From: Mytilus edulis
Taxonomy: Eukaryota
Assembly: GCF_963676685.1 (NCBI RefSeq)
Contig: NC_092345.1
Coordinates: forward strand, 22,258,001 to 22,322,000
Reading direction: 5' to 3'
DNA length: 64,000 bases
The notes beneath the pieces are model-generated. The model was not told the origin of the DNA. It searched no databases and was given only the letters and a program-made list of their open reading frames with translations. This document shows, in pieces, positions 2 to 55,884 of this stretch. The position numbers were made by a program, and so were the translations under genes. Each line of letters opens with the position of its first letter. Within the stretch, counting starts at the first letter, position 1.

Positions 2-1150
2 TTGTGTTCGTATTTTATGAAGACGGCTTTATTCTGGGTCTCAGAGGAAGTGGACATTGACACATTTCAAATACCTAAATTATATACTTGTTTTTTTCTC
101 TGCTTGAATAAATTGATATCATGGGTAAAAAACTGTTACTGTCCAAATTATTTTATACCTGAACACAACATGTTCCTTGAAAAGATCACGCCGGAAAACA
201 ATAAAATGGTACTACGTGTACTTAACACCATACAGTCTGGCGGAATTGAAAGATTGACGAGGAATTTATTTCTGCCGCATGATGGAAATCCTCTTTTTGT
301 AAGTACAAAGAGTGAATCTTCGTTCATTACGCTAGACTTATTATTTTTCAGGATAAGTGGATATTGGGTTGCGACTCATATTTCACAGTGTTATAAAGCA
401 ATGGCACTAATTGAATCTTTAATTAAGTCAGAATCGTCTCCGTTCATTATTGGTGTATGTAAACATGAATACGCTATATTTAGTACATTAGCAGTACAAC
501 TTCTATTACCACCAACCATATTAAATAAAATGTACAAACGTTATCATAAACATTTACAAGACTGTATCAAGACAGATGCTGTTTCGGGTTGGTTGTTATA
601 TGCGTCTTTTTATTATGTGACAGGACAATACAACGTAACACTCAAACTGATAGATTATGTTCTATCAAGATGTTCACCTGATTTAGTGTATAAGGACTGT
701 ATCTATTGGGAGCAATGTATAAACCGTTACAGGCATAATGTCCATTACAAAAGGACATCAAATGAGAGGATGAAAATAGCCACTATAGATCTAATTTATT
801 ACTTGCAGCACTCTTCATTAATACCAAAAGAACTACAACTTGAGGTGGAATACGGAGACTTTTCTATACCGCCAATTACAATGTCTCATTGCCTTAGATT
901 TCTATGCTACCACCATCAGGGCAATACTTTAAACAGACAACACGCTTTACGTGATTTATACTCAGCAGTGAAAGACGATTTTGTCAAAGGACTTAAAAAG
1001 ATATCTGATTCATTAACAGTACTTGGAGTATGTATGGAGTTGTCAGGAGATAAAAACAAAGCGTATAATTGTTATCAAAATGCATTACAGTGTGAGTTTA
1101 TTATATGTTCTTCAGCAAAAGTTAGGATATCAAAGCTTTTCGGCTTATAA
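2..1150 (+). CDS. Mab-21/cGAS-like receptor (cGLR) family protein, C-terminal part (Mab-21 C-lobe plus TPR-like helical tail); 5'-truncated by the window edge
   Basis: Open frame from the window start. The motif SYFMKTALFW...CLNKLISWVKNCYCPNYFIPEHNMF is typical of the Mab-21 C-terminal helical lobe. TPR-like segments LYASFYYVTGQYNVTLKLI and LGVCMELSGDKNKAYNCYQNAL. The nucleotidyltransferase catalytic residues would lie upstream of the window. Confidence 0.85.
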   Translation: MCSYFMKTALFWVSEEVDIDTFQIPKLYTCFFLCLNKLISWVKNCYCPNYFIPEHNMFLEKITPENNKMVLRVLNTIQSGGIERLTRNLFLPHDGNPLFVSTKSESSFITLDLLFFRISGYWVATHISQCYKAMALIESLIKSESSPFIIGVCKHEYAIFSTLAVQLLLPPTILNKMYKRYHKHLQDCIKTDAVSGWLLYASFYYVTGQYNVTLKLIDYVLSRCSPDLVYKDCIYWEQCINRYRHNVHYKRTSNERMKIATIDLIYYLQHSSLIPKELQLEVEYGDFSIPPITMSHCLRFLCYHHQGNTLNRQHALRDLYSAVKDDFVKGLKKISDSLTVLGVCMELSGDKNKAYNCYQNALQCEFIICSSAKVRISKLFGL

Positions 1151-12434: not shown

Positions 12435-15400
12435 ATGCAGAAGAATGATGATTTTGACCAAAGTGTCTATATACCAGAAGCTGAAATACCGTCCGAGGAT
12501 GAGGGAATCATTAGTAGTGCACGCATGACAACAGCTGATGCAATACCTGAAAATGATTTTGACCAACATGTATGTTTATCATCAGCTGAAATACCGTCCG
12601 ACGATGATGAACTCATTAGAAGTGCACGCATGGCACCATCTGGTGCAATACCCGAACGAAATGTATTAATTGACAATGACATAAAAAATCAAGAAGATGA
12701 TGCAACAACAAATACAAAACAGTCATTAAAGGAGAGACTTGTGAAAGATGACATTTTCAGACGTAAATTTATATTATGGATTTTCCTGTGTATGTCTAAC
12801 GGCATTCTGGTGAGTTTTTACTATATGAATTCTTTATTTACAACACTATTAGACTAAAATTGTTAACTTTAATTAACAGTTGAAAATATTGGGAAAATAT
12901 AATATAGTGACCCAAATAATGGTAATTATCTCATTAGAATTTCTAAGGGATGAATTCCAAAAATAAGTCATAAGATTTGTATTTATTGTAGATCTGTAAA
13001 ACTGATTAATATATAGTTCATGTGCCTTGTACATTAAAAGAACAAAATTGGACGAGCAATATCCTCTCCTCAATTTGTATTTATAGGTTGCAGGTGATAA
13101 ATGTATCTTAGAATCTGAAATCAAAAAGAACCTTCACAGAAAATTAAAAGAATGTCTTAAGCTTAAAAAGGAGTAGGTCCGGTAAGGGCTGATTTTGGCC
13201 TCAAATTTCAGGTTCATCTAACGAAAGTTTTTGGACACTTTTTAAACACTTAAGTGTCTATTTCAATTGATTCGATTAGTTAATGTGACAGATTTTAACT
13301 GATTTAATCATTAAAAACGCTCTGATTCAAGCTTAAATATGAAAAATCTATCAAATATCCCCAAAAACGTCACTTTTCAGATGGTTTTTGTCAAAAATGA
13401 AAGTGGCCGCATCCGTGTTCATCCTCAACCTTTATATATGTTTTGTATTATCATCAAATACAACTTACATTTCAATATTATGAATGAACACGAATGCGGC
13501 CACTTTCATTTTAGACGGAAACCGTCTAAAAATGAACAAAAATGCTAAAATTTTGAAGACTTCAGTAATTTAGCATGACTTATTGATGCAAGAACGCGAT
13601 ATTTGTGCATAGTATTGTCAAAAACAGCTCATATTCATGTAGCAGAAGCATTTTACTTTCCAAAATATAGCTTAAAGATTACATTTTCATAATTTTCGAA
13701 AACTGCTATATTTTGGGGCCAAAAAGGGGTCTTACTGAACCTACTCCTTAACTTTGACAGATGAAATTTTAATGTAGTTACTAAACCATGCAAGTAACGA
13801 AACAGTCTATGCAATACAATGTACCGTCTTTTGTGTTAACAGTTTGTCGAATAATTTCCCTACATTTGATAAAGCAAACAAGAAGTCATTAGAGACTGGA
13901 ATGAACTGTATTTTAGGGTTGCCGTCTTTTGTGTTAACAGTTTGTCGAATAATTCCCCTACATTTGATAGAGCAAACAAGAAGTCATTAGAAACTGCAAT
14001 GAACTGTATTTTAGGGTTGGGTTATTGGACAATTAGGTCCTTCGCTGCTGGACCTGAAAGAGATAACTAATTGTAGACTAGAAGAAGCTTCGTTTTTTCT
14101 GACGTCGGTGTTTATTGGCTATCTGATGGGAACAATTGTGAGTGGAGCTATTTACCAGCGGATGAACCCGTTCTTGCTAATTTTCATTGGAATTACCACT
14201 CTCGGTGTCACGTCTGCGGCGATTCCATGGTGCTCTCTTTATGGAATAATGATTTCTATGCATATACTGAAGGGTTTTGGTTTTGGCGTTCTCGATACAG
14301 GTGAGAATTCGAGTTTACTATTATAGAATTATTATATTGTCCCCTTAATTTTATATAGCTAGGAAACTTCTTCAAATGTTACCTATTTTTAAAATTAACA
14401 TCATCTTTTAAAACATTTTAATTGTTTGTGATATACCGTCAAAGCGCTTACTTATAGGTTGTACTGTCAAATCAATCATCCTTAATAAGAACGAGAGTTG
14501 TATGTGTGAGTGTATGTGTGAGTGTATGCGAGTGGGAGAGAAAGGCTTTTTATTTTTACTTTATGTGATTACATGTTTGTTATGAGCCCTATGATTAGGA
14601 ACTAAAATATCTTTATCTTTATAGGGAGAAAGTTATGTTATTCTTCATATAAAAATTCATTTTCCCTAATGACCGTTTCCCATTTTATTCGACGCATGTA
14701 ATATCGTACTTTTTTAAAATATAATTATATGCATTACAACGCCTACAACTCATTTGTTACCGCTTTCTACATAAGGAAATGTCTGTACTAATTCATGGAT
14801 ATAACAGTTGATATCCATTTCAATTTCCATTTCCATTCCATTATGCTTTTGTCATTTGATTAAGGACTTTCTGTTTTGAGTTTCCGACTTTTTGCTATTC
14901 AACTTTTTGTTTGTTTTACTTGCAGCCGGAAATTCTGTGTTCATTTCCAACTTTAAAAACGAAAAGGGAATACAGTCCTATCTACATGCTATACATCTTA
15001 TGTTTGCTGTTGGTGGGTTTTTGTCTCCAATAGCAACAGCGCCGTTTTTAATGCAGGACCTTCCTAGCACAAAAGTGGACGAAAATCTAAATTTATCTGT
15101 CTACCAAAATACTAGTTTGTTAGTAACATCGAGTTTACCCTCTATTGTATTCCTAGAGAACAACACGGGTTTTTCAACATTGCAATATACTTTACAGACG
15201 TCAAAGTTTCCCAACCTGACAGATTATAATGACATACATGATAGAAACAATACTAAAGATACTCAAAGACTCTCAGTACTGTACAAAGCATATCTGATTT
15301 CAGCAGGCTTGTGTTTTATGCTTTCGATACCATTTTTGTTCATGTGTTTTACCAACAATAAAACAAACAAGGAAGAGAAATCGAAACAAATTAACAAAAA

Positions 15401-16043
15401 ATTGAAACTACCTATCCGTGTGAAATTAAGCATTCTTTTTTTAATGTGCCTTTTCTTGGGAATCGATAACGGAATGGAAGATACATTTTTTGGACTATTT
15501 ACGACATTCGTTGTGGTTCAGTTTGGATGGACGAAGAAGAGCGGATCATATATAACTTCACTATATTGGGCATCATTTGCCTGTGGTCGTCTTAGTGCTA
15601 TTTTTATCGGTCGAAGATTGAAGGCTTCAAAATTATTACGTTATTACATAAACGTTTTTCTTTTAGCTATGATCGGACTTTTTGTTTCTACAATGTTTGC
15701 TTTTGATATAGGAATTTGGATATTTTTTCCAGTGATGGGATTTACAGTATCTGTTTTCTTTCCATCAATATTTATATGGACGCAAGATTTTCTTACTGTG
15801 GCGGGAAAAGTGTCATCCGTTTTATTAGTTGCTGCGTCATTAGGATCCATGCTTAACCCGATTTTGATTGGTTATTTAATGGATAATTACAATTCAATGT
15901 GGTTTGCTTATATTACATTAGCGGATGGTATAGTAATGTGGATTATGGTGTGGATAGCTACTTATGTTTCTCATTATGTAAAAACATATCGTGTTGAAGG
16001 ACCTAATGATGAATGTATTGAAATTCAAGAAAATAATTCATAA
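12435..16043 (+). CDS. MFS transporter A, MFSD4/NaGLT1 (FucP/FHS)-like; exons 12435-12809, 14015-14300, 14926-16043; ~592 aa
   Basis: GT-AG junctions join in frame (CTG|gtgagt; ttttag|GGT; ACAG|gtgag; ttgcag|CC). Motifs GPSLLDL, GVLDTAGN, LHAIHLMFAVGGFLSP, YWASFACGR, SVFFP; many hydrophobic helices. Confidence 0.9.
13170..13747. mobile_element. Kolobok-like MITE in intron 1 of transporter A
   Basis: TIRs ggagtaggtccggtaag / cttactgaacctactcc, followed by TTAA. Confidence 0.7.
13824..14019. repeat. 98-bp tandem duplication that includes the exon-2 splice acceptor of transporter A
   Basis: 13824-13921 is nearly identical to 13922-14019; both copies end gaactgtattttagggttg. Confidence 0.9.
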
Positions 16044-27700: not shown

Positions 27701-29958
27701 AACAACCGTATACTTTGAAATTAAAAGTCGTGCTCACGTCTATGTATTCACATAAAAGAGAGGTGAACGTTACCAAAAGGGATATTCAACCATTATATGT
27801 TGAAAACAAACGGTCAATGAAGTAGTCGAAAATCTATCAACAAACGATCAAAAGACAAATAACAGTATACAAAAAAAAAACCCGAAAGACTGAACACGGA
27901 CCCTACCAAAAACTGGTGTTGATCTCAGAGCGGTACTTAGACCCTGCTCCACATGTGACACCCGTCATGTTAATTCTATAAGATACGTTGATAATGTATA
28001 TCATGTAATAACTTTAAGACATCCTGCAATAACGGACCGGTAATTGATTCTTTTCTAATACGAAATAGCGATGTAAATATTTTCTTAACCTTGAGATTTT
28101 TTTTTTAATTGAATCACGTTTTTATGACAAAGGATACACGAGACTGTTACCAGTATAAACAACTCAAACATTGAAAAAGCACTAAGAACAAAAATAATTA
28201 AAGCAAGAGCAACATGAAACCCTATTAAAACAAAACTAAGGGGCGGTAGCAGGTGCTCCCGAGGGGAAAGATGATCCTGCTTGACAATGTGACATGAGGT
28301 ACCATCGTGTTGCTCGTAAAATCCCGGTGATCCGTGTATTTTTGGTAGGTCACATTCGAAAAGAAAATGACGCTATTGTAGATACAACAATTGGAATATA
28401 TCTGTCATCATCTTCGAACAGATATTTCATAACAGTCAACCAACTCGTGATGGCGTCCGGAGCGTCACTGATGAGTCTTATGTAGACGAAACGCGCGTCT
28501 TGCGTTCTAAATTATAATTCTGGTACCTTTGATAACTAATTAACCGCTTGGAACTCATGGTTTAATGAACTTACGGACATACATAAATTATGACATAACA
28601 TCATAGAGCATCTAACGACGTCCAAAAAAGTAGAAGACTAAACGAAAGTCTAATATATGTTTCTCTTACAACTGATATAATAAAAGTTCTTACATAATCT
28701 GTTCGCACGAACGTAAACTGACGTCGGTCTTCATCTATTGGATAAACCTATAATTTCTAACCGATATCGAGTATATTTCCAGTGAAAATTAAATATTGTC
28801 AAAAGGGTCATTATAAATAAATTGTGCTAAGAATTTAATGAATCGCTTTACTTTTCAGTTGCAAATTCGGAGCTCTTGAGTCTATTTGGAAATCAAGTCA
28901 GTCCTTATATGCAGGCCATGCATTTTGCATTTGCTACAGGAGGAATAATCAGTCCTTTGGTCACAGCACCATTTCTCACAGAACAGTATGATAATGGTGG
29001 CAATTCGTCGATAATAAACCAATCATCGTTAGTTATGCAAACTGGAAATATACAATTAGATAACATTTCATATCATTTGAATAATCTAACAACTGTGGAA
29101 AGAAATACCACGTACCATACGTCGAAGGATTCACATATATTCATTCCGTACACAATATCAGGTGTTCTCGCCATGTCTTCATCTGTATCGTTTTTACTTG
29201 TTTATATCAAATCCAGAAGACTAGCCAAACGACAAATCGATGAGGTAAAAATTGATCGAAATGAACGTCGATTATCTTTCCTTGTCAAACTGGTAATTTT
29301 GACAATAATGTCCATTATATTTCTACTATACACTGCGATGGAAGACACAATAGGTGCTTATGTTGCAACATTTTGTGTGGAACAGATGGCCATGACTAAG
29401 GAAGATGGATCTTATGTGACCGCCGTATTCTGGACTTTCTTTGCTTTTGGGAGATTAACAGGAATCCCAATTAGTAATATAGTTAAGTCAATACCCTTAG
29501 TTGGTATATATTCATCTTTACTTGTGATATCTTTTCTGTTGTTATCATTTTCACCTATGATAAATTCTTCTGTTACCGTATGGATTTCTACTGCTGTAAC
29601 TGGATTTGCTATGTCTATATTATTCCCGACTTTGTTCACGTGGGCAGAAGCAGACTTTTTATTGGTTACCGGTAAAATTGCGTCATTGTTCATTATGACA
29701 TCAACTTTAGGATCTATAACAAGTCCAGCGGCATTAGGATATTTGATTGAAGAAGTCAGTCCGATGTGGTATTCATATATACTTCTTGGAGAAAGTGTAG
29801 GAGTAATAATTTTCTTCGTGATAGCCATTATTCTTAAAAAGAAGCTTCCACAATTAGATGATAATAATGACAGGTTTAATATAGAAATCAAAATTGATGC
29901 AGATTCTAGTCCTGAACGGTCTGTACTTATGGATGTACCAGAAAATAAAGTCTCATAA
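24748..29958 (+). CDS. MFS transporter B, MFSD4/NaGLT1-like; exons 24748-24864, 27228-27513, 28859-29958; ~500 aa
   Basis: In-frame GT-AG junctions with the same phases (0, 1) and the same 286-nt exon 2 as A. Motifs GWILGQFGPSIFDL, GLLDT, PYMQAMHFAFATGGIISP, FWTFFAFGR. An in-frame stop upstream of ATG 24748 fixes the start. Confidence 0.9.
28460..28507 (+). ncRNA. Minimal type I hammerhead ribozyme (retrozyme/PLE-type)
   Basis: gagcgtca-CTGATGA-gtc ttatgta gac-GAAA-c gcgc GTC-ttgcgttc: full catalytic core, 3-bp stem II, palindromic loop III, stem I with one mismatch. Predicted cleavage after C28499. Confidence 0.85.
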
Positions 29959-32959: not shown

Positions 32960-35900
32960 TCACCTCCTAGATTTCCTGTTTTCTTCTGATTCAACACTCA
33001 TTTGAATTTCGTTTTCAAACGAATATGTATTTGCTTGTCTGGACACAAATGTAATAGTCCAAACTAAAACAAGCAAGACAATAGTTTGACCCAATGTTAT
33101 ATAAATGAACCATTTAGGAGACAGGTTATCCATTAAGTACCCTATCATTATCGGATTAATCATCGATCCAAGTGAAGCAGAAAACATTAGAAGAGAGGCT
33201 ACTTTTCCAGTTACAGGAACAAAGTCCTCTTCTGTCCAGAGAAGTATCGACGGAAAGAACACAGATATTGAAAATCCTACTACTGGTGAAAATATCCAAA
33301 TTCCAGTGGGGAATCCAAACTTTGTAGAAAGAAATATTCCAATTGTGCCTGCCAATACGATATTGATATAAACTCGTAACAATGTTGATGGCTTAAAATG
33401 TTTTGCAATGAAAATTGCAGTAAAGCGTCCAAATGCATACGCCGCCCAGTAAACAGAGACAAGATATGAGCCTGTTTGCTTCGTCCATTGAAACTGATTA
33501 ACAGTGAACGCTGTAAAAAAACCAAAGTACGTGTCTTCAAGTCCATTATCCACTCCTATAAATAAACTCATTAAAACGAGTATGAGTAATTTAAATGGTA
33601 GAGGTAGTTTTCTATGTCTATATTCCATTCCATCCGGGTTCTTGGTATCCATACGATATTCGGATCTGCTTTGCCAACATAAACATAAAAAGGGAATCGC
33701 TGCAGTTAGACACAAACCTGTTGATATCAGGTAAGCTTGGTAAAGAATTGACTCTTGTCCTCCAATTTCTGATTTGTTATCATTGTAAGCAGTTGAATCG
33801 TTAATAGTCGTATTGGTAAAATTTAGACCATTGCTGTTTGTTGTTAATATACCAGACATTCCAGCATTGGAAAACATTGCGTCATATGATTTAGTTGTCG
33901 ATTGCCACTGTGTTTCATTGTTTTCATTTGAGGGCGTTGGCAGAAGAAATGGCGATGTAGCAATTGGTGATAAAATTCCACCTACTGCATAAATGAAATG
34001 TAGCGTTTGCATGTACGACCGGGCAGATTCTTCTTCTCGGAACTTCAGAATAAAGACAGAATGTCCAGCTAAAAGTTAGCAGTGATATAAAAAAACAATA
34101 ATGTAGATATGGATCTGCTTACCCTTCCGGAGCACTGAGATCACCCCCAGTTTTTGGTGGGATTCGTGTTGCTTAGTCTTATGTTTTCTATGGTGTTTCT
34201 TGTGAACTGTTATTTGTCTGTTTGTCTTTTTCATTTTTAGCCATGGTGTAGTCATTTTGTTTTCAATTTATGAGTTTGACTGTTCCTCTAGTATCTTTCA
34301 CCCCTCTTTTGCAACACTTTCACGTAAGATTATTTTAACAGAACACTTCGTCTTTTTTTTGCAGCAGGTAAGTCAAAAGGACATAATTGTTGCCCTCGTT
34401 TTGAGAAATTCATATATTTGTTCTGATATCCAAAAGGGACACACTTTCGGAAATGTTAAAAGACATTTACATTTATTTTTTTCTACATATATTACATAAT
34501 GGCACACGCTACAATAAAGTTTTACTCTATGAAATGAAACTTTGAAGAACTTTTTTTCCAAATTGTCTAGAATATGAAAATAAGCTAAAATATATGATTT
34601 GCATATACACCACGAGTTTAAGATACTATTTAAATCGTTTAAACAAAAGTTCATGGGTAGATGCAAAATATATGAAATATAAGGCGAACAAATTTTCGGT
34701 TACTTAAATACGAAACAAATTAAGATCAACAACGAATTTTAATACCCTCGAAATATTTTTTTCTCAGTCAATCACTAAAAATCGATACAAGAAAAACATG
34801 AATCCATAGTAATCTTATAAAGATTTATATAACACTGCTTAAAGAGTTTGAAGTTGCACATTCGTGTTGATTATAAACGTTTACATGTATGCCTTAGGTG
34901 TGACATGGAATGTGGTAAAAAATATATCTACATAGCAATTGACTCTGTTAAAATTGTATCATGTTGATAATTATACAAACCTGCATCCAATAAGCCACCT
35001 CCTATTCCCTTAAAAATGTGCATTAATACCATTACTTCATATATTACAGAAAAAGGAATCGCAGCTGATGTAGACGCCAGCATGAAAAGGCCAATTAAAA
35101 TGATTCGATTTGCATTCATTCGTCCAAACAGTCCGCCACTGATCACTGAACCACATAAATAACCAATGAAAGTTGCTGTTACAAACCAAGAAGCTTCCTC
35201 TAACGTACTGTCTGTTAATTTCTCGAGATCCAACAAGGAAGGTCCAAGCTGGCTCATAACCCATCCCTAATCATACAAAATTAAAGTCAGTCAGGCAATA
35301 AAGACAATAACAATCAAAACCAAGGAGTAAACAAAGACTCACAAAATAAAATATCAAAGTTTCCATGTAAAAAAGAATCCAATGGCATTTGCTTCCAGAA
35401 CGGTTCAAAGTTAGTTTTAATGCCATTTGCTGCGTTTAATATACGGTATCAGAATCATTACGAATCACATTTATATCAGCTAGAATTGAAATATTAGTTA
35501 ATCCACGATTCAATAAACGTTCTCATTTTTAAAACTGTCAACTTGTAATTCCTCAGAAATTTAACAATGAAACATTTACATTTTACAGCGTTTTCGGTCC
35601 ATTATTTAACTTTTTTTTTTAACCTTGACTAAAAATTGATCCACGTAATGCATATAAAGATAAAAGGGTCAAAAGTACATTGATTCCTGTTTTTATTTCA
35701 CTCTTCACTGTAACAGATGTCATTGTCGACATTGACAATCCATGCAAACAGTTAATATAGTACTCCAGGACCTGCGTACAACCATCATCTTTTAGGGGTT
35801 GTGTTTTTTTTTTGGGAAAATGCTTCATGTTTAAAATATTCGCACTATAAACGCTTACAACCATATAAAACTATTACAAGAAGCATTCATTACATGTTTT

Positions 35901-46061: not shown

Positions 46062-48440
46062 TTACACAGTACTTCCTAAGTCCGGGTTCAAAGTATCATA
46101 GACTTCGTACAGTGAAATGTAGCCGTTCCCATGACCAACTGCCATTTTAGGAAAAGAACCAGGCGAAAAGTCAATAAATCTCGGAGTTTTTTCCAGTAAC
46201 GAATGCTGCCTTACTTCATCGACTACTACTGAAGATGAGTCAACAAAGTATATGTGATTCTTTCTTGTGTCTGCTACAACAAATAAGTTTTTATATAATC
46301 CTATCCCTTGTGGATCCCCTAAATTTCTACTAATCGAACCGTCAAAAACACCTTCATGAGCTCCTTCCATGGTCATGAAAATTACACGCGACGTTTTGTA
46401 ATCAGAAATACCTATTATTCCGTCCTTGCTTACTCTAATAGATCTTGGGTAACCTAGTCGAACAGCGTCCGACCCATTAAATGTCCGTAGAAAGTTTCCT
46501 TGGTGATCGAGAATATCTACTGCGGGCAAAGAAAACGGGTTAGTTGTACCACAAACAAACTGATTGGTATTCTCATTAAACGTTAAACAAGTGTAGCCTT
46601 TCTGTGTTACTATAGTACTTATGACATTGATTTGGTAATTATTCATTGGGTCGATTGCGTATGTAATAAGGTATCTCTGTTTAGGAAAAGTCACTGCCAT
46701 ATATACACACGGCTGTCGTGGCAGTCTATATACTGTACACCCATGTGGATCGACGGGTAATTCATAGGCATTTAAACAAGATCTAAATCCCCTCGTATTA
46801 AAAACTTTGGCTGTTTTATTTCTTTTATCTATTGCAAGCAATGCCCTTTCATCTATCCAGCATAAATCTGTTAAAGTAGGATTCTTTCGGTCTCTTCCCC
46901 TTAATTCTGCATTAAATTTAGTAAGAGGATTTAATCTTAACCTGTTGTCATCATTTGGCGTTCCTGGTGGCGTTATTGATCCTGAGGATACACCATGCGT
47001 TAAACCTCTGGGTACTAATGGCGTTGTAAAAAAGTCATCCACGTTAGGAGCAGATGGTAGAGATTGAGCCGAAGAATTATTACTTCCGGAATTATTGGAG
47101 TTTGGTTGTGGAAAGGTAAAGTGTTCACGTGACACCGGTGAATTACTAGTATTTCCTATAGAATTGTTAAAGTTTGGTGGTGGAAAACGATATGGATTCT
47201 GAGTTACTGGTGAAGTATTTTGTCTATTTGAATATGTCGTGCTACTACTTGAGGTTAATTCTTGGTATGATGGAGGTGGTTCGTCTTCCGGTTGATAATC
47301 ACTGTCTGTATCAGGAGGTGAAACGCTTATCACTATTCCTGGTGATTGTTCATTCCTATTAGCAACATTAGCCGCTGTTGGTGTAACATCAGATGATCCA
47401 GTATTTTCATTGATTACGGAATGATTATCGATTCTGGTGTGGTTGCTTTGTGAATCATTGCTTTCATTGGATATCACCGCACCAGGCGATCTTGTACTAG
47501 AATTGATAAGCTCAATATTTATAAGATCACCCTCGGTCAACATATCTTCGAATTCTGTGTTTATAACAAAACGAATTTCATTTTCATCCTGAACATACTG
47601 TTTGATTGTTGTAGCTTTAGCGGTAAAATCTTCCAAGGTTGATAGCAAAGCATCAAAGTTCAAGTAACTTGCAAAAGAATTCAATATATCGCTATCATTA
47701 AAGATTCTGTTCACAGATGGAAAACATGGACCGAGGCTTTCCAACAACGAAAAACTTAGTTTTGTGTATTGTGTGATTGTTGCCATTTCAGTATCAGTGA
47801 ATAATTGAAGTTTGTCTAAGACATCTTTTTCATGTTTTGTTAAATAATCTAATAGCTGCATTTTTAAATCTGCAAAATACTTCATGATGCCCAATACAGT
47901 TTCGTCTTTCTTGGACAAATTCTGACGTTCACGAGATTTCAAAGATTCACAAATTTCAGTCAATTCTCGATTAGTAGTTGACAACGATTCTTTAACTCTT
48001 GTCTGTTGCCTATTCCGAACTTCTTTCATTGCCTCTTCGGTAATCAATTGACACAACGGTTTGTTTACTTTGCAGACTTCACATGCAAGATCAAAACTAT
48101 CTGCATAAAAATACTCGCACAAATAATTCGGATGTTCCTTACAGGCTACCATCCCAGATTCTTGAAAAGTGGGAATTCTTTTATCAGTAAACACAGAAGC
48201 TGTTCCTAAAGATTCTAAACCCGAATTATTAATAGAAGAACCAGACGACATAATTTTGCATTTACACGTCGGACAAGACACGTCCCCTTGGTTTGAGTTC
48301 CGGTCGATTAGTCCCTTCAAACATTCAAAACACAAACTGTGCATACATTCGAGAGTCCGCGGATCAAAACACTCTCGTTTACAAATACCACATGTTCGTA
48401 GTGACGATATAATGTCAGAAATAGGATCAGCTGATGCCAT
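46062..48440 (-). CDS. TRIM-like E3 ubiquitin ligase: C3HC4 RING, degenerate B-box, coiled coil, S/N/P-rich linker, NHL-like beta-propeller; single coding exon, 792 aa
   Basis: RING CGIC...CMHSLCFEC...CPTC; B-box-like CKEH...CEVC; propeller repeats YPRSIRVSKDGIIGISD and DPQGIGLYKNLFVVAD. Probable 5'UTR acceptor ttccag at 48474-48475. Confidence 0.88.
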   Translation of the reverse strand: MASADPISDIISSLRTCGICKRECFDPRTLECMHSLCFECLKGLIDRNSNQGDVSCPTCKCKIMSSGSSINNSGLESLGTASVFTDKRIPTFQESGMVACKEHPNYLCEYFYADSFDLACEVCKVNKPLCQLITEEAMKEVRNRQQTRVKESLSTTNRELTEICESLKSRERQNLSKKDETVLGIMKYFADLKMQLLDYLTKHEKDVLDKLQLFTDTEMATITQYTKLSFSLLESLGPCFPSVNRIFNDSDILNSFASYLNFDALLSTLEDFTAKATTIKQYVQDENEIRFVINTEFEDMLTEGDLINIELINSSTRSPGAVISNESNDSQSNHTRIDNHSVINENTGSSDVTPTAANVANRNEQSPGIVISVSPPDTDSDYQPEDEPPPSYQELTSSSSTTYSNRQNTSPVTQNPYRFPPPNFNNSIGNTSNSPVSREHFTFPQPNSNNSGSNNSSAQSLPSAPNVDDFFTTPLVPRGLTHGVSSGSITPPGTPNDDNRLRLNPLTKFNAELRGRDRKNPTLTDLCWIDERALLAIDKRNKTAKVFNTRGFRSCLNAYELPVDPHGCTVYRLPRQPCVYMAVTFPKQRYLITYAIDPMNNYQINVISTIVTQKGYTCLTFNENTNQFVCGTTNPFSLPAVDILDHQGNFLRTFNGSDAVRLGYPRSIRVSKDGIIGISDYKTSRVIFMTMEGAHEGVFDGSISRNLGDPQGIGLYKNLFVVADTRKNHIYFVDSSSVVVDEVRQHSLLEKTPRFIDFSPGSFPKMAVGHGNGYISLYEVYDTLNPDLGSTV

Positions 48441-51446: not shown

Positions 51447-52444
51447 AACTCTATATAACACTGCAACTCTATACAACATTGCAATTCTATACCACGCTGT
51501 AATGTATATACAGCACTGCAATGTCTATACAACACTACACTACAATTATATATAACACTCTATACAACATTGTAGTTCTATCTCTATACAACACTTTGCC
51601 AAATAAAGTGTTGCACCACCAAAATAGACTTGTTAGTAAATTGAAATTGCAAATGGAAAGATAGGCAAAATATTGAAATTGCGCTTCATGCGACGAAAAC
51701 ATAACAGTAACACTAAGATCCAGTGAATTAGTACTAAATCCTTTGTCACAAATATAAACATATTAATTTAGTTTTATTGCTAATTGTATACTTTTGATTT
51801 CCACTATCATATGAGACAGTATATATAGCTCTGCTATTCCTTAAAACAATGCAATTGTGAATGTCTTAAATGGAAGTGACAAGCTACGACTAGCGGATAA
51901 AACTGTATATATCTCAGTATAGAATTACAGTGTTGTATATAGTTGCAAAGGTGTTTAATATAGAGCTACAAACTTGTACAGAATTATACAAGCTGTATAG
52001 AATTGTTGCATTGTTGTGTAGGATTTCAGAGTTGTATCAAATCGCTATGTCGAATAGAATTAAAACTACGATTAGCAGAGGAACGTAGGGATGAGGAGTT
52101 GATAAAACGTGATAAAACTGCATATCTCTGTGGCGACATTTGATATATAGAAGAACTGCCCCAACTGGTGTTAACATGCCCATTGTTAAATTGTAAAATG
52201 TATACTGCTCTTTTGCTGTATGATTTTTAAAAATTAAAACTTTGCCTTGACCATTTATATAACTTTTCGTCTGTTTTTCCCGTTAAGCTGCAGTAAAGTA
52301 CGTTTTATGGATATGTACCCTGTCCGAATACTGATAACTTTGTTAAACATACGAATCACTACTATTTATAGATAATAAACCGTTGAACATTTGGTGAACT
52401 TGAAATGTAAACATTGACATAAATTATCTTTACAAGGGTGAAAA

Positions 52445-54557
52445 ATGGTTTCCTTTTATACAGTTGGTTGTATGTCTGGTTCATCTCTGGATGGAATAGA
52501 CTTATGTTATGTTGAATTTACTGGGGATATCGAAACTGATAAATGGCAATACCGGATACTGAAAGCTATTACTGTCTCATATGATACTGACTGGAAATCA
52601 AAACTACGATCAGCTAAGGAACTTATGGGTGAAGATTTAATAAAACTGCATTTAGAGTATGGACATTTCATAGGTAAAACGGTAAAAGACTTTGTTGAGC
52701 ATGAAGATATAAAAAATCTCGATTGTGTTGCATCGCACGGACACACAATTTTCCACCAACCTAACCTTGGATACACGTTCCAGCTTGGAGAAGGAGAAAC
52801 GTCAGCCCATTACCTTAAACAACCTTTTGTATGCAACTTCCGGAACAAAGATGTAGCTCTCGGGGGACAAGGCGCACCTCTGGTCCCAAATGGAGAAAAA
52901 TTCTTGTTTAGCGACAACGAGATATGCATTAATCTTGGTGGGATTGCTAATATCGGTTTGAAAGGTTTACAAGGATATGATATTTGCCCGTGTAACTATG
53001 TGTCAAACAAGCTGGCAGCTATTCACGATCCGAAATTAGAATACGACCCAAACGGCATAATATCGGAGACAGGAACTGTTATAAAAGAGATACTGGGTAA
53101 ATTAGACGCTTTGCATTTCTATGAACAACTTCCACCAAAGTCTCTAGATGCTGAGTGGATTGAAGCTCAAGTATTACCTATCTTAGATGTAAGTTTGGTA
53201 CATGTAATAGCCTTACATTATTATAAATGTTTGTACAAATAACTATTATATAAGTTAGATTTGTCATCAGTGTTAGAATACTGTATTGGTAGCCTAATAA
53301 CTCGAATTATTTTTGTTCAAATTCTTACATCAAAGTATAACAAGAATGGGTAAAATCCTTTGTAGCTTCTTACATATAAATGTAAATGTAAAAAAAAAAA
53401 CTCACTCTATATAGGTATAACATCAGAATTTTTAGAAATCTTACACGAATGAATGGTGGTCCAATGTTTTAAGATAAAAGACTATAAATAAGGGGATAGC
53501 ACCACGGAGACAGAGAGAGCAAAACAGATTCTTCTAGGACTGGGCCTAAAAGCGAAATTAAGAGATAAATCTGTAATGCACGTTGTCTCACTTGATATTG
53601 AAGTAAACATTTATTGTGTTTCAAATATGAAAGAGAAATTTTAGACAAGCTCCATCAGTGGCGGATCCAGAAATTTTCATAAGTGGGGCCCACTTTCTGA
53701 CCCAAGAGGAGGCCCGCTCCAGTCACGCTTCAGTGATTCCCTATATAAGCAACCAAATTTTTTCCCAAAATGGGGGGTCCGGGCCCCCTGCCCCCCCTAA
53801 ATCCGCCTCTGTCCATAAAATAAAATAACATTTAAGTCTGAAAATTTACCAATTTAGCGACATAGAAATTTCTTACATAATTACATGTCTTCGCAAGTTG
53901 TTATTTCTGGTAGGTTTCGTGCGGCTTGTTTATCTTTAATTTTTATAGCAAGATATTTTCAAAAAAATTCCAGGCTACATTCATCTTATACAGTTGATAT
54001 CGTTTAAAAGTTATGTTTTATTCTATCAGTATAAAAAATATGTGTTTAAAGAAGTTTTAGAAATTATAATGAAGAAATGATATACAGTATAGACCATATT
54101 TATTTTCCAGACAACACAGAATAGTATTCCAGATCTTCTAATGACTTACACAGAGCATGTAACCAATAGATTAACTGAAGCATGCAAGCTCGCACGTGAT
54201 TCACTTCATGCTGAAAATAAACTCAAACCTGAACACGTGTTAAAGGTTCTGGTAACAGGCGGTGGTGCTTTTAATAAACACCTTATCAGATTGCTTGAAG
54301 GTAAACTGCAAGATCAGGGATTTATTTTAGAACAGGTCGACGAAGTTACTATTGCCTTCAAAGAAGCTTTGATATTTGCATTCCTTGGTTTACGTTGTCT
54401 GTTGAATCAAACAAATGTTTTCCATTCTGTGACCGGAAGTAAAGCAGATTCCGTTTCTGGAAGCATTCATCGACCAGCACACTTTGTTAACAGTGATTCT
54501 AGGATCATCCGATATCTTTTGGAGAAGAACAAAGATAGGCAAACATCGTGTACATAA
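52445..54557 (+). CDS. anmK: Anhydro-N-acetylmuramic acid kinase (AnmK family), Bacteroidetes-like; exons 52445-53188 and 54111-54557; ~396 aa
   Basis: AnmK signatures in order: GCMSGSSLDGID, ASHGHTIFHQP, FRNKDVALGGQGAPLVP, INLGGIANI, YDICPCN, PPKSL, VTGGGAFN, KEALIFAFLG, SVTG. A phase-0 intron (GAT|gtaagt...ttccag|ACA) joins the two ORFs without stops. Confidence 0.95.
53656..53811. mobile_element. MITE in the anmK intron, 5-bp TSD tccat
   Basis: Inverted near-copy of 10134-10295. Confidence 0.88.
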
Positions 54558-55884
54558 ACACCTTTTAATCAGTGTATTTGTTCTTTGTTTGTTGCTGTAA
54601 ATTTTGAATTAAAGCACATAATTTAAATGATTTCAACAACTAAGCATTATTCGTGGTTACTAAGTAAAGATATTAAAATGTACAAGATGTCAATTAGCCT
54701 CTTTCACATTCAAAACTGTCAAGCCAGTTTGCTTTGAAAAAATATAATATGCAGTATGACTTAGCTGTGTAGTGGGATAATCCCTCATTTTTACAGAAAA
54801 TACAATGGTAATATACTTGTTAAAGCATAGGATACTCAAGACTTAGCAACAGTTTGTTGTTGCCTTTGTTTGAGAGAGTTAGTTACGGGTACTTTGTGCA
54901 GATTGTGGTGAAGTTCATTACTTGTTGTGATGTTTTAAAATACATACAAGAAAAGAACAAAGAACTTATTTCGTACATATGTTATGCTGATACCTTGCAA
55001 GGTCGTCATGGGTCTACTTGTCTTTGACTTCATTTCATGGATCAATGTACAAAGTGAAGTTTTAGTGGTTAAGTCCATATTTCAGATACTATAAGCAATA
55101 GGTCTTCTTTATTGGGTGTATGTAATGATTGGAAGGTGTAGGTATCCAACTGGCAGTTGTCATCTGACCTTGACCTCATTTTTATGGTTCAGTGGTTTAA
55201 TTTAAGTCTGTCTTTTTAATACTGTATGCAATAGGTCAACTTTATTTGGCATTGAGAAATATTTTATGCTATACATGTCCGTTTGGTAGGTTTTACTTGA
55301 CCTCATTTTTACCGTTCATTGCTCAATACTATTTTTTTTTGATTTCATGTTTTCTCAAACTATAAGCAATAAATTAACTACTTCAGGTGTATGGACTGAT
55401 TGCAAGGTGTATAACTCTATATGTCTGTCTGGCAGTTTGTTTCTTAGGTAATTTGATACATTCAAGTGTACTAAAAAAATCATGTCAGGAACAGTGATCT
55501 GACATTATACAGTTAAGACCTATATTTGAATTCAGGTTGACCAAAAGTTAGTAAGGCTTATTGCAAAATTATTAGAATGTTTGCTTAAGCATTGTATAAT
55601 ATCTTATTGTGAATGAATAAGTGAAACATGCATTATTTAGAAGGGAAAAGGATAAATGAAATGGTTTGTTATATATTAACTTATAAAACAAGCTGTGAAA
55701 ATCATTTTTTTAGGGCCATTATTCCTATCAGGAGGTAAAGAAACCATTTTGGCGATAATAACTTATTTCTATATCTTATTTTGCTGAAAATTTTTGACAT
55801 CTCAGTTTTTCTCCCCATGACTTATTTGTACATGTACATCTTGCAGGAAATTAAAGAAGATTTAGATCATGCAGACTATTGTCA

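Follow-up and report, generated by a model that had tools for sequence, protein, structure and literature searches.

In the genome of Mytilus edulis, a stretch of 64,000 nucleotides (the window; contig C2, positions 22,258,001-22,322,000, of a 1.37-Gb assembly) carries a gene for AnmK, the kinase of 1,6-anhydro-N-acetylmuramic acid (hereafter anhMurNAc). We consider it probable that anmK passed once from a bacterium to an animal, was domesticated and vertically inherited, and encodes a cytosolic anhMurNAc kinase. A horizontal origin followed by domestication, as proposed in the first-pass annotation of this DNA, is well supported: the gene is chromosomal, carries an intron, is spliced and AT-adapted, has the look of purifying selection, and its nearest non-animal relatives are bacterial. 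The gene likely entered only once, at an ancient date, in the ancestor shared by molluscs and annelids. In fact, AnmK is an old gene common to bivalves, gastropods and at least two annelids, and is automatically annotated in public databases. The gene is no peculiarity of the mussel.

A spliced gene in the mussel chromosome

The two exons encode 248 and 148 residues, giving a product of 396 amino acids, and both exon boundaries lie in phase 0 (Table 1). At its 3′ end the intron has a T-rich polypyrimidine tract with AG at 54110, after which the reading frame continues from 54111. In separate searches, each exon exceeded the 24-bit cut-off of the Pfam AnmK profile PF03702 (exon 1: 3.4e-36, 125.5 bits, profile 2-242 of 367; exon 2: 4.9e-8, 32.9 bits, profile 285-365 of 367). 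The NCBIfam model NF007144 was the best for both, with 1.7e-85 over profile positions 6-249 and 2.2e-22 over 251-357; since this profile runs on across the exon junction, nothing is lost there. The open reading frames (ORFs) and these matches bear out the original description of an AnmK of about 396 residues split by a 922-bp GT-AG intron. The closest database protein, P0001 of M. galloprovincialis, differs from the window protein at 7 of 396 residues (98% identity over exon 1) and was used as its full-length stand-in for folding, PDB comparison and tree work.

The window copy is transcribed and correctly spliced. Contigs from RNA and DNA libraries were aligned to window positions 51800-55300. 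One RNA-library contig of 1195 nt (X3 record 16) covers 52442-53188 and then passes straight to 54111-54558, and a second one of 684 nt (X1 record 2) covers 52813-53188 and then 54111-54418. The predicted junction of 53188 with 54111 is therefore exact in two RNA runs, which represent two studies and two organism labels. Outside its repeat, the intron was uncovered in both RNA runs that yielded contigs (X1 and X3), whereas it is kept in two contigs of a DNA run (X15 records 12 and 13), one passing from exon 1 into the intron (53001-53679) and the other from the intron into exon 2 (53784-54241). Read-derived contigs hold 11 single-base variants in the coding sequence (CDS), nine synonymous and two non-synonymous, a small sample whose pattern looks like purifying selection.

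The window AnmK is a genuine nuclear gene of Mytilus. It lies about 22 Mb into a chromosome-scale contig that, as the repeat search shows, reaches past 106 Mb. Its composition is host-like, with a GC content of 0.389 in the CDS and 0.312 at third codon positions (GC3), next to 0.324 in the intron and 0.33 in the whole window. As had been noticed at first reading, the intron contains a miniature inverted-repeat transposable element (MITE) of the host. This element is 156 bp long, its 11-nt terminal inverted repeats match at 10 of 11 positions, and TCCAT is found on either side. At least 2277 candidate copies are distributed over every large contig of the genome; scoring of 39 other copies gave 92-95% identity to it, and in a DNA run the depth over the element is about 1e6. 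The flanks of the gene, described earlier as ordinary metazoan sequence, do hold animal-type ORFs, namely a RING/NHL TRIM-like one, three of the NaGLT1-like MFS type and a Mab-21 one.

A second mussel AnmK was found on another chromosome (contig C8, 40802490-40804843), with 97-98% identity to the M. edulis protein P0004 named anmK and 67% protein identity to the window copy over exon 1. It has the same donor (…PLLD/GTAAGT) and an acceptor at the same codon. Moreover, among ORFs of 240-300 residues from unannotated contigs there are at least 20 proteins in which homology stops at the residue equivalent to 248 and the frame runs on with Val-Ser or a like pair, followed by junk. Read-through of a phase-0 GTnAGT donor gives such a Val-Ser pair, and from the paralogue and these truncated proteins we infer that the intron site is widely shared.

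Conserved residues, fold and putative activity

The window protein retains the motifs listed in the first-pass annotation (MSGSSLDGID, GGQGAPL, the Asp of YDICPCN and the Glu of KEA), and HGHTIFHQP and KEALIFAFLG are found as well. In an alignment of 363 homologues with E. coli AnmK, it keeps D16, T100, R134, N167, N173, D187, N192 and E330 (E. coli numbering). According to P. aeruginosa structures, as cited in 10.64898/2026.03.13.711553, D16 serves Mg and the phosphates, T100 the N-acetyl group, R134 the lactyl carboxylate, D187 the attack at C1, and E330 the gamma-phosphate and the sugar. In the mussel's own numbering, both the catalytic and nucleotide-binding set (D16, D179, E333 and GGQGAPL; D14, D182 and E326 in the P. 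aeruginosa enzyme, PaAnmK) and the anhMurNAc contacts (T101, R133 and N163/N169; T97, R129 and N168 in PaAnmK) are intact. In the Bacteroidota-type set most sequences have the Cys-Pro-Cys variant of the DxGPGN motif; the likeness of DICPxN to Bacteroidetes sequences suggested by the first-pass annotation holds, as Cys at both positions is commonest there.

The AlphaFold model of P0001 has a predicted local distance difference test score (pLDDT) of 90 and a predicted TM-score (pTM) of 0.89. When it was compared with the PDB by Foldseek, the top matches were all AnmK (3cqy, 3qbx, 4mo4/5 and 8bre, E 1e-27 to 1e-25), at target-normalised TM-scores of 0.80-0.83, and the fungal levoglucosan kinase ranked next. 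The equivalog cut-off of NF007144, a model of Bacteroidota-type AnmK, stands at 436 bits for the whole protein and is missed by P0001 (386) and the paralogue P0004 (363), but also by the bacterial neighbour P0074 (381), so that the shortfall is a property of the subclade and not an animal-specific decay.

At its N-terminus, the window protein aligns with the bacterial start from residue 4 and has no extension; as this leaves no room for a signal peptide, the product is probably cytosolic. Beyond the GSIH motif, some 27 residues form a tail that bacterial homologues lack and that is present, in conserved form, in bivalves, gastropods and the Owenia-like P0061; this tail and the coding intron are the animal-specific features of the gene. 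In the window protein, P0004, P0010, P0012, P0014, P0021, P0023, P0030, P0045 and P0061 the tail consists of a predicted hydrophobic/aromatic helix and, after it, [KR][KR]-x-S or R-x-x-S, a basic Ser motif that looks like a site for basophilic kinases. Mercenaria and Dreissena have a shorter version, and Capitella has none. In the P0001 model the helix spans residues 379-394, with low to moderate pLDDT.

Judged by its residues, the mussel AnmK is a probable anhMurNAc kinase; tick AnmK, likewise domesticated by an animal, has measurable activity of this kind (10.64898/2026.03.13.711553). At the expense of ATP, anhMurNAc would have its 1,6-anhydro ring opened and its O6 phosphorylated, yielding N-acetylmuramic acid (MurNAc) 6-phosphate. 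The substrate would be produced by the lytic transglycosylases of ingested or invading bacteria, a supply that would fit a filter feeder digesting bacteria. Upstream, muropeptides would be trimmed by host amidases of the PGRP type and by hexosaminidases. It is reasonable to suppose that the animal metabolises, detoxifies or senses anhydro-muramyl sugars in this way.

Several observations weigh against such a function or narrow it. A search of the mussel genome for the MurQ etherase returned only weak exon-wise matches within a multi-exon GKRP-like gene. GKRP is the animal homologue of MurQ, and this gene, with its GKRP/MurQ-like SIS domain (contig C1, 93442774-93451189, minus strand), is the only candidate homologue of a MurNAc-6-phosphate etherase found in the genome. 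In the raw RNA-seq run X21 (2026; about 6% sampled) not a single read fell on the AnmK exons; expression is thus not ubiquitous or high, and would be low or tissue-restricted. Furthermore, the Arg equivalent to E. coli R134 is lost in some molluscan copies, being Gly in the Mytilus paralogue, Val in Aplysia (P0059), Ser in Babylonia (P0073) and Gln in Candidula (P0132), which indicates that the ancestral substrate was not kept everywhere. The paralogue on C8, with this carboxylate-binding Arg replaced by Gly (NFGNKD) and a phosphate-binding loop reading TTGPSLDG, may have an altered substrate, and part of the animal AnmK family may have moved to other substrates. The Babylonia protein also has N173C, the substitution highlighted for tick AnmK, in what looks like convergence. 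Finally, recombinant tick AnmK has a measurable but weak anhMurNAc kinase activity, about 500-fold below that of E. coli AnmK, and its authors suspect a shift of substrate (10.64898/2026.03.13.711553); the same shift may apply to the mussel.

Perhaps, then, the mussel gene encodes a domesticated AnmK-fold kinase with a shifted substrate or role, be it another 1,6-anhydro sugar, anhydro-muropeptides, or a regulatory or non-catalytic task, and if this is true, peptidoglycan-sugar catabolism would be the wrong description. The weak activity and altered pH optimum of the tick enzyme, for which its authors propose a substrate shift (10.64898/2026.03.13.711553, section 2.4), point in this direction, as do the replacement of Arg134 or Asn173 in some molluscan copies, the animal tail with its basic-x-x-Ser motif, the MurQ search with no evident etherase, and a fold equally common to the fungal levoglucosan kinase. 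Yet the window copy retains the Thr in contact with the N-acetyl group, the Arg in contact with the lactyl carboxylate and all catalytic residues, its score with the bacterial AnmK model is as high as that of its bacterial neighbours, and the sequence match is better to solved AnmK than to solved levoglucosan kinase (8e-27 versus 3.5e-19). In our judgement such a shift is unlikely.

Another view, which we hold to be rather improbable, is that the animal AnmK is not catabolic but a cytosolic "licensing" kinase of innate immunity, acting on anhydro-muramyl fragments such as anhMurNAc peptides of the tracheal-cytotoxin type. Mammalian NAGK makes 6-phospho-muramyl dipeptide (6-phospho-MDP) for NOD2. 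Ring opening and addition of a 6-phosphate by AnmK would give 6-phospho-MurNAc ligands, and the basic-x-x-Ser tail would be a regulatory phosphorylation site. If so, lophotrochozoans would sense or disarm the very class of peptidoglycan fragments that lysozyme does not make.

Distribution, phylogeny and donor

Exon 1 was searched against 5.8 billion proteins. Full-length homologues labelled AnmK or AnmK-like were found at 53-67% identity in bivalves (Mytilus, Mizuhopecten, Ylistrum, Pinctada, Saccostrea, Tegillarca, Sinanodonta, Potamilus, Mercenaria and Dreissena), gastropods (Haliotis, Patella, Lottia, Gigantopelta, Biomphalaria, Lymnaea, Bradybaena and Aplysia, with Babylonia lower at 47%) and annelids (Owenia and Capitella), and bacterial proteins first appear at about 49%. 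A search with the Capitella protein adds Candidula, Batillaria and Arion. The distribution, which had been named at the outset as a check on the proposed transfer, is thus broad among bivalves and gastropods and includes both annelids. The best 120 matches to the Capitella protein contain no other animal phylum, which is no evidence of absence, and no named brachiopod, nemertean, flatworm or cephalopod is among the matches listed in the two animal-homologue searches.

On the bacterial side, 78 of the best 80 loci in bacterial and archaeal contigs (one genome per species) are labelled Bacteroidota, one is Verrucomicrobia-labelled and one has no label; the identity of the mussel AnmK to Bacteroidota-type AnmK is 38-45%. 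In a quick IQ-TREE analysis (LG+C20 with posterior mean site frequencies, PMSF; 93 rows), all 19 animal rows form one clade with 95 in the SH-like approximate likelihood ratio test (SH-aLRT), inside a 43-row clade (99) that also holds proteins of uncultured Bacteroidia. The final careful PMSF tree was made with no E. coli outgroup and with seven exon-1 ORFs added to break the annelid branches. Here the 20 animal-type rows (13 named proteins and the 7 exon-1 ORFs) form one clade, with an ultrafast bootstrap (UFBoot) of 98 and SH-aLRT of 93, which is present in 96% of bootstrap trees. Its sister is a clade of 18 bacterial proteins (93/95), among them AnmKs of uncultured Bacteroidia and one from a Verrucomicrobia-labelled contig of a metagenome-assembled genome (MAG), and the two together are split at 100/99 from the typical AnmK of Flavobacteriales, Bacteroidales, Cytophagales and Chitinophagales. 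Branching within the animal clade largely reflects taxonomy for pteriomorph bivalves, other bivalves and gastropod groups, with annelid-grade sequences basal.

As regards the donor, the Bacteroidetes origin suggested by the first-pass annotation stands in part: the animal genes do lie within the Bacteroidota-type AnmK radiation, but their sister group also has MAG proteins labelled Verrucomicrobiota or Opitutales. The AnmK in the Verrucomicrobia-labelled MAG (locus L006, contig C204 of G004) belongs to the animal-sister subclade and shares 42% identity with the mussel protein; the AnmKs of the phylum's other genomes are all distant, which points to mis-binning or to transfer between phyla. An Opitutales MAG protein is among the matches to the Capitella query, and most of the nearest ESM-Atlas cluster bears a Verrucomicrobiota label. 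Among 151 Verrucomicrobiota genomes sampled, one has a close AnmK and four other matches are 28-31% identical; among 301 Bacteroidota-labelled genomes sampled, 205 have a match, roughly 55 of them of the close type. Verrucomicrobiota as the home of the subfamily was rejected on the one genome in 151, although the Opitutales MAG protein and the Atlas cluster keep it slightly open. Our conclusion is that a Bacteroidota-type AnmK was present in the donor, which, given the labels in the sister group, cannot be pinned to Bacteroidota alone.

Two matters of rooting limit the reading of a single transfer nested among bacteria. The place of the animals as "sister to" or "nested within" their bacterial neighbours depends on the root of the family. 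In addition, a careful tree of 46 rows rooted with E. coli AnmK has a single animal clade in just 21% of bootstrap trees, its outgroup branch of 4.5 substitutions joining beside the long Capitella branch. For this set, animal monophyly was not rejected by the approximately unbiased (AU) test (p = 0.325), and the E. coli root was discarded because its very long branch drew Capitella from the other animals.

Two or more separate transfers from similar bacteria, for example one to molluscs and one to annelids, would agree with the place of Capitella in the E. coli-rooted tree, with a transfer-prone gene that entered ticks, rotifers and ciliates independently (10.64898/2026.03.13.711553; PMC13198582), and with the lack of the phyla and class named above among the matches listed. 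Nevertheless, we consider them very improbable, given the one animal clade obtained once the long outgroup was removed, a monophyly left unrejected by the AU test, and the exon-1 ORFs grouping with Capitella and Owenia, whose homology ends at the molluscan intron codon. Hardly any credence is left for vertical descent of an ancient eukaryotic AnmK or levoglucosan kinase lost in most lineages, as the fungal members of the family might suggest, with the fungal enzyme at 21-23% identity in structural alignment versus 38-45% for Bacteroidota-type AnmK and with bacterial sequences surrounding the animal clade in the tree. Bacterial contamination or an assembly chimera, to which only the typically bacterial family would point, is already refuted by the spliceosomal intron with its host MITE, the spliced RNA contigs, the position 22 Mb deep in a chromosome-scale contig, the DNA contigs bridging exon and intron, the host-like GC3 and the second copy on another chromosome.

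Under a single transfer with domestication, a Bacteroidota-type anmK would have entered the germ line of an animal ancestral to molluscs and annelids, most probably a single time. A phase-0 spliceosomal intron would then have arisen behind codon 248 and a short C-terminal tail of eukaryotic style would have been added, the base composition of the gene would have drifted to that of the host, and vertical inheritance would have been accompanied by a duplication in the mussel lineage.

Genomic surroundings, related systems and implications

The coordinates of the gene and its surroundings are collected in Table 1. ATTAAA downstream of the stop codon is a possible polyadenylation signal, with contigs that give no proof of the transcript end. 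The three long MFS exons, tandem or inverted, lie 18-37 kb upstream of AnmK and represent expansion of a gene family on a local scale; their ORFs share 99% identity with a "sodium-dependent glucose transporter 1B-like" protein of Mytilus edulis. That these genes might be muropeptide transporters of the AmpG or SLC46 kind was considered and ruled out, as they are homologues of NaGLT1/MFSD4-like sugar transporters.

Table 1. The mussel AnmK gene and other features of the window
Feature	Position	Strand	Basis or remarks
AnmK exon 1, codons 1-248, 744 nt, ATG at 52445	52445..53188	+	ORF and sequence; Pfam and NCBIfam matches; RNA contigs over 52442-53188
Phosphate-binding loop MSGSSLDGID, residues 10-19 (Asp16 = PaAnmK Asp14)	52472..52501	+	Sequence; Asp in 358 of 363 aligned homologues
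YDICPCN motif with catalytic Asp179 (= PaAnmK Asp182, E. coli Asp187)	52976..52996	+	Sequence and alignment; residue role from 10.64898/2026.03.13.711553, section 2.4
Phase-0 GT-AG intron, 922 bp, donor GTAAGT at 53189, acceptor ...TTTTCCAG	53189..54110	+	Sequence; missing from RNA contigs, kept in DNA contigs
MITE-like host repeat within the intron	53656..53811		Terminal inverted repeats CAGTGGCGGAT / ATCCGCCTCTG; TCCAT each side; genome copies
AnmK exon 2, codons 249-396 (148 codons), with TAA stop at 54555-54557	54111..54557	+	Profile matches; RNA contigs over 54111-54558 and 54400-54638
KEA with Glu333 (= PaAnmK Glu326; gamma-phosphate and sugar binding)	54360..54368	+	Sequence and alignment
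Animal-specific C-terminal tail, residues 370-396: predicted helix, then basic-x-x-Ser motif	54474..54554	+	Alignment; model of P0001
ATTAAA, candidate polyadenylation signal	54608..54613	+	Sequence; RNA contig X1 record 6 extends to 54638
ORF cut by the window start, Mab-21 HhH/H2TH-like domain (cGAS/Mab21 family)	2..1150	+	
NaGLT1/MFSD4-like MFS long exon	14892..16043	+	
NaGLT1/MFSD4-like MFS long exon	28876..29958	+	
NaGLT1/MFSD4-like MFS long exon	32960..34012	-	
TRIM-like intronless ORF of 792 aa, nearest upstream neighbour of AnmK	46062..48440	-	N-terminal RING finger and weak NHL repeat
Another extremely abundant repeat	55076..55300		DNA depth >3e6; in a raw RNA-seq run about 900x, mainly on one strand; loose ends, sharply set, at 55152 and 55197

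Bacterial AnmK (PF03702, NF007144 subtype; structures 3QBX, 4MO5 and 8CPB of P. aeruginosa and 3CQY of Shewanella) has the same two-domain fold of the ASKHA type and the same core length, and all its contacts to ATP/Mg and anhMurNAc recur in the mussel copy, which stands at the identity to Bacteroidota enzymes given above. The mussel gene differs in its animal chromosome, its spliceosomal intron, its host codon composition and some 27 extra C-terminal residues; no recycling genes are adjacent, and the animal has no peptidoglycan of its own to recycle. The fungal levoglucosan kinase of Lipomyces starkeyi (4YH5/4ZLU) is a eukaryotic member of the family with the same fold and the same anhydro-ring-opening kinase chemistry, but it is much less similar in sequence, is about 50 residues longer, and falls below AnmK in sequence and fold searches.

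In the tick Ixodes ricinus (IrAnmK) and in rotifers, as in the mussel, a Bacteroidota-type anmK of bacterial origin was fixed in an animal lineage, acquired introns, was codon-adapted and vertically inherited, and kept its catalytic residues. The tick gene has an intron in its 5′ untranslated region and a single coding exon, whereas the mussel gene has its intron in the coding region and keeps Asn173. According to the 2026 tick preprint on bioRxiv, anmK is "normally absent in Eukaryota" and passed from Chitinophagaceae into the ancestor of ticks, with a separate transfer to rotifers; Chitinophagaceae and rotifers, not molluscs, are given as closest to the tick gene, silencing of which impairs reproduction, and molluscs and annelids are not mentioned (10.64898/2026.03.13.711553). 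AnmK is also among the prokaryote-to-ciliate transfers (PMC13198582). The different gene structure and the nearest relatives given in the preprint lead us to infer a mollusc/annelid transfer that is probably independent of the tick event and much older. Among the matches listed for the Capitella-protein search there was no arthropod or rotifer. A literature search by enzyme name, also combined with mollusc and annelid terms, found no account of the lophotrochozoan gene among the papers listed (subscription journals were outside its scope). The lophotrochozoan AnmK is apparently a new, independent and much older case, visible as automatic annotation, with no paper found describing it.

Anhydro-muropeptides are potent signals and toxins for animal epithelia, as known from tracheal cytotoxin in Bordetella and Neisseria and in the squid-Vibrio symbiosis. 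They come only from bacterial lytic transglycosylases, and the substrate sugar is confined to bacterial cell walls. The split of molluscs and annelids dates back roughly half a billion years, and a kinase for this anhydro-sugar has apparently been kept intact in the two phyla since before it. This would imply that these animals, among them many filter or deposit feeders living on bacteria, have a dedicated handling of anhydro-muramyl sugar. Standing beside the AnmK of ticks and rotifers as an independent, much older case, the gene suggests that one bacterial gene has seemingly been useful to animals repeatedly, and mussels, oysters and Capitella may offer a tractable entry to the metabolism or sensing of peptidoglycan fragments in invertebrates.

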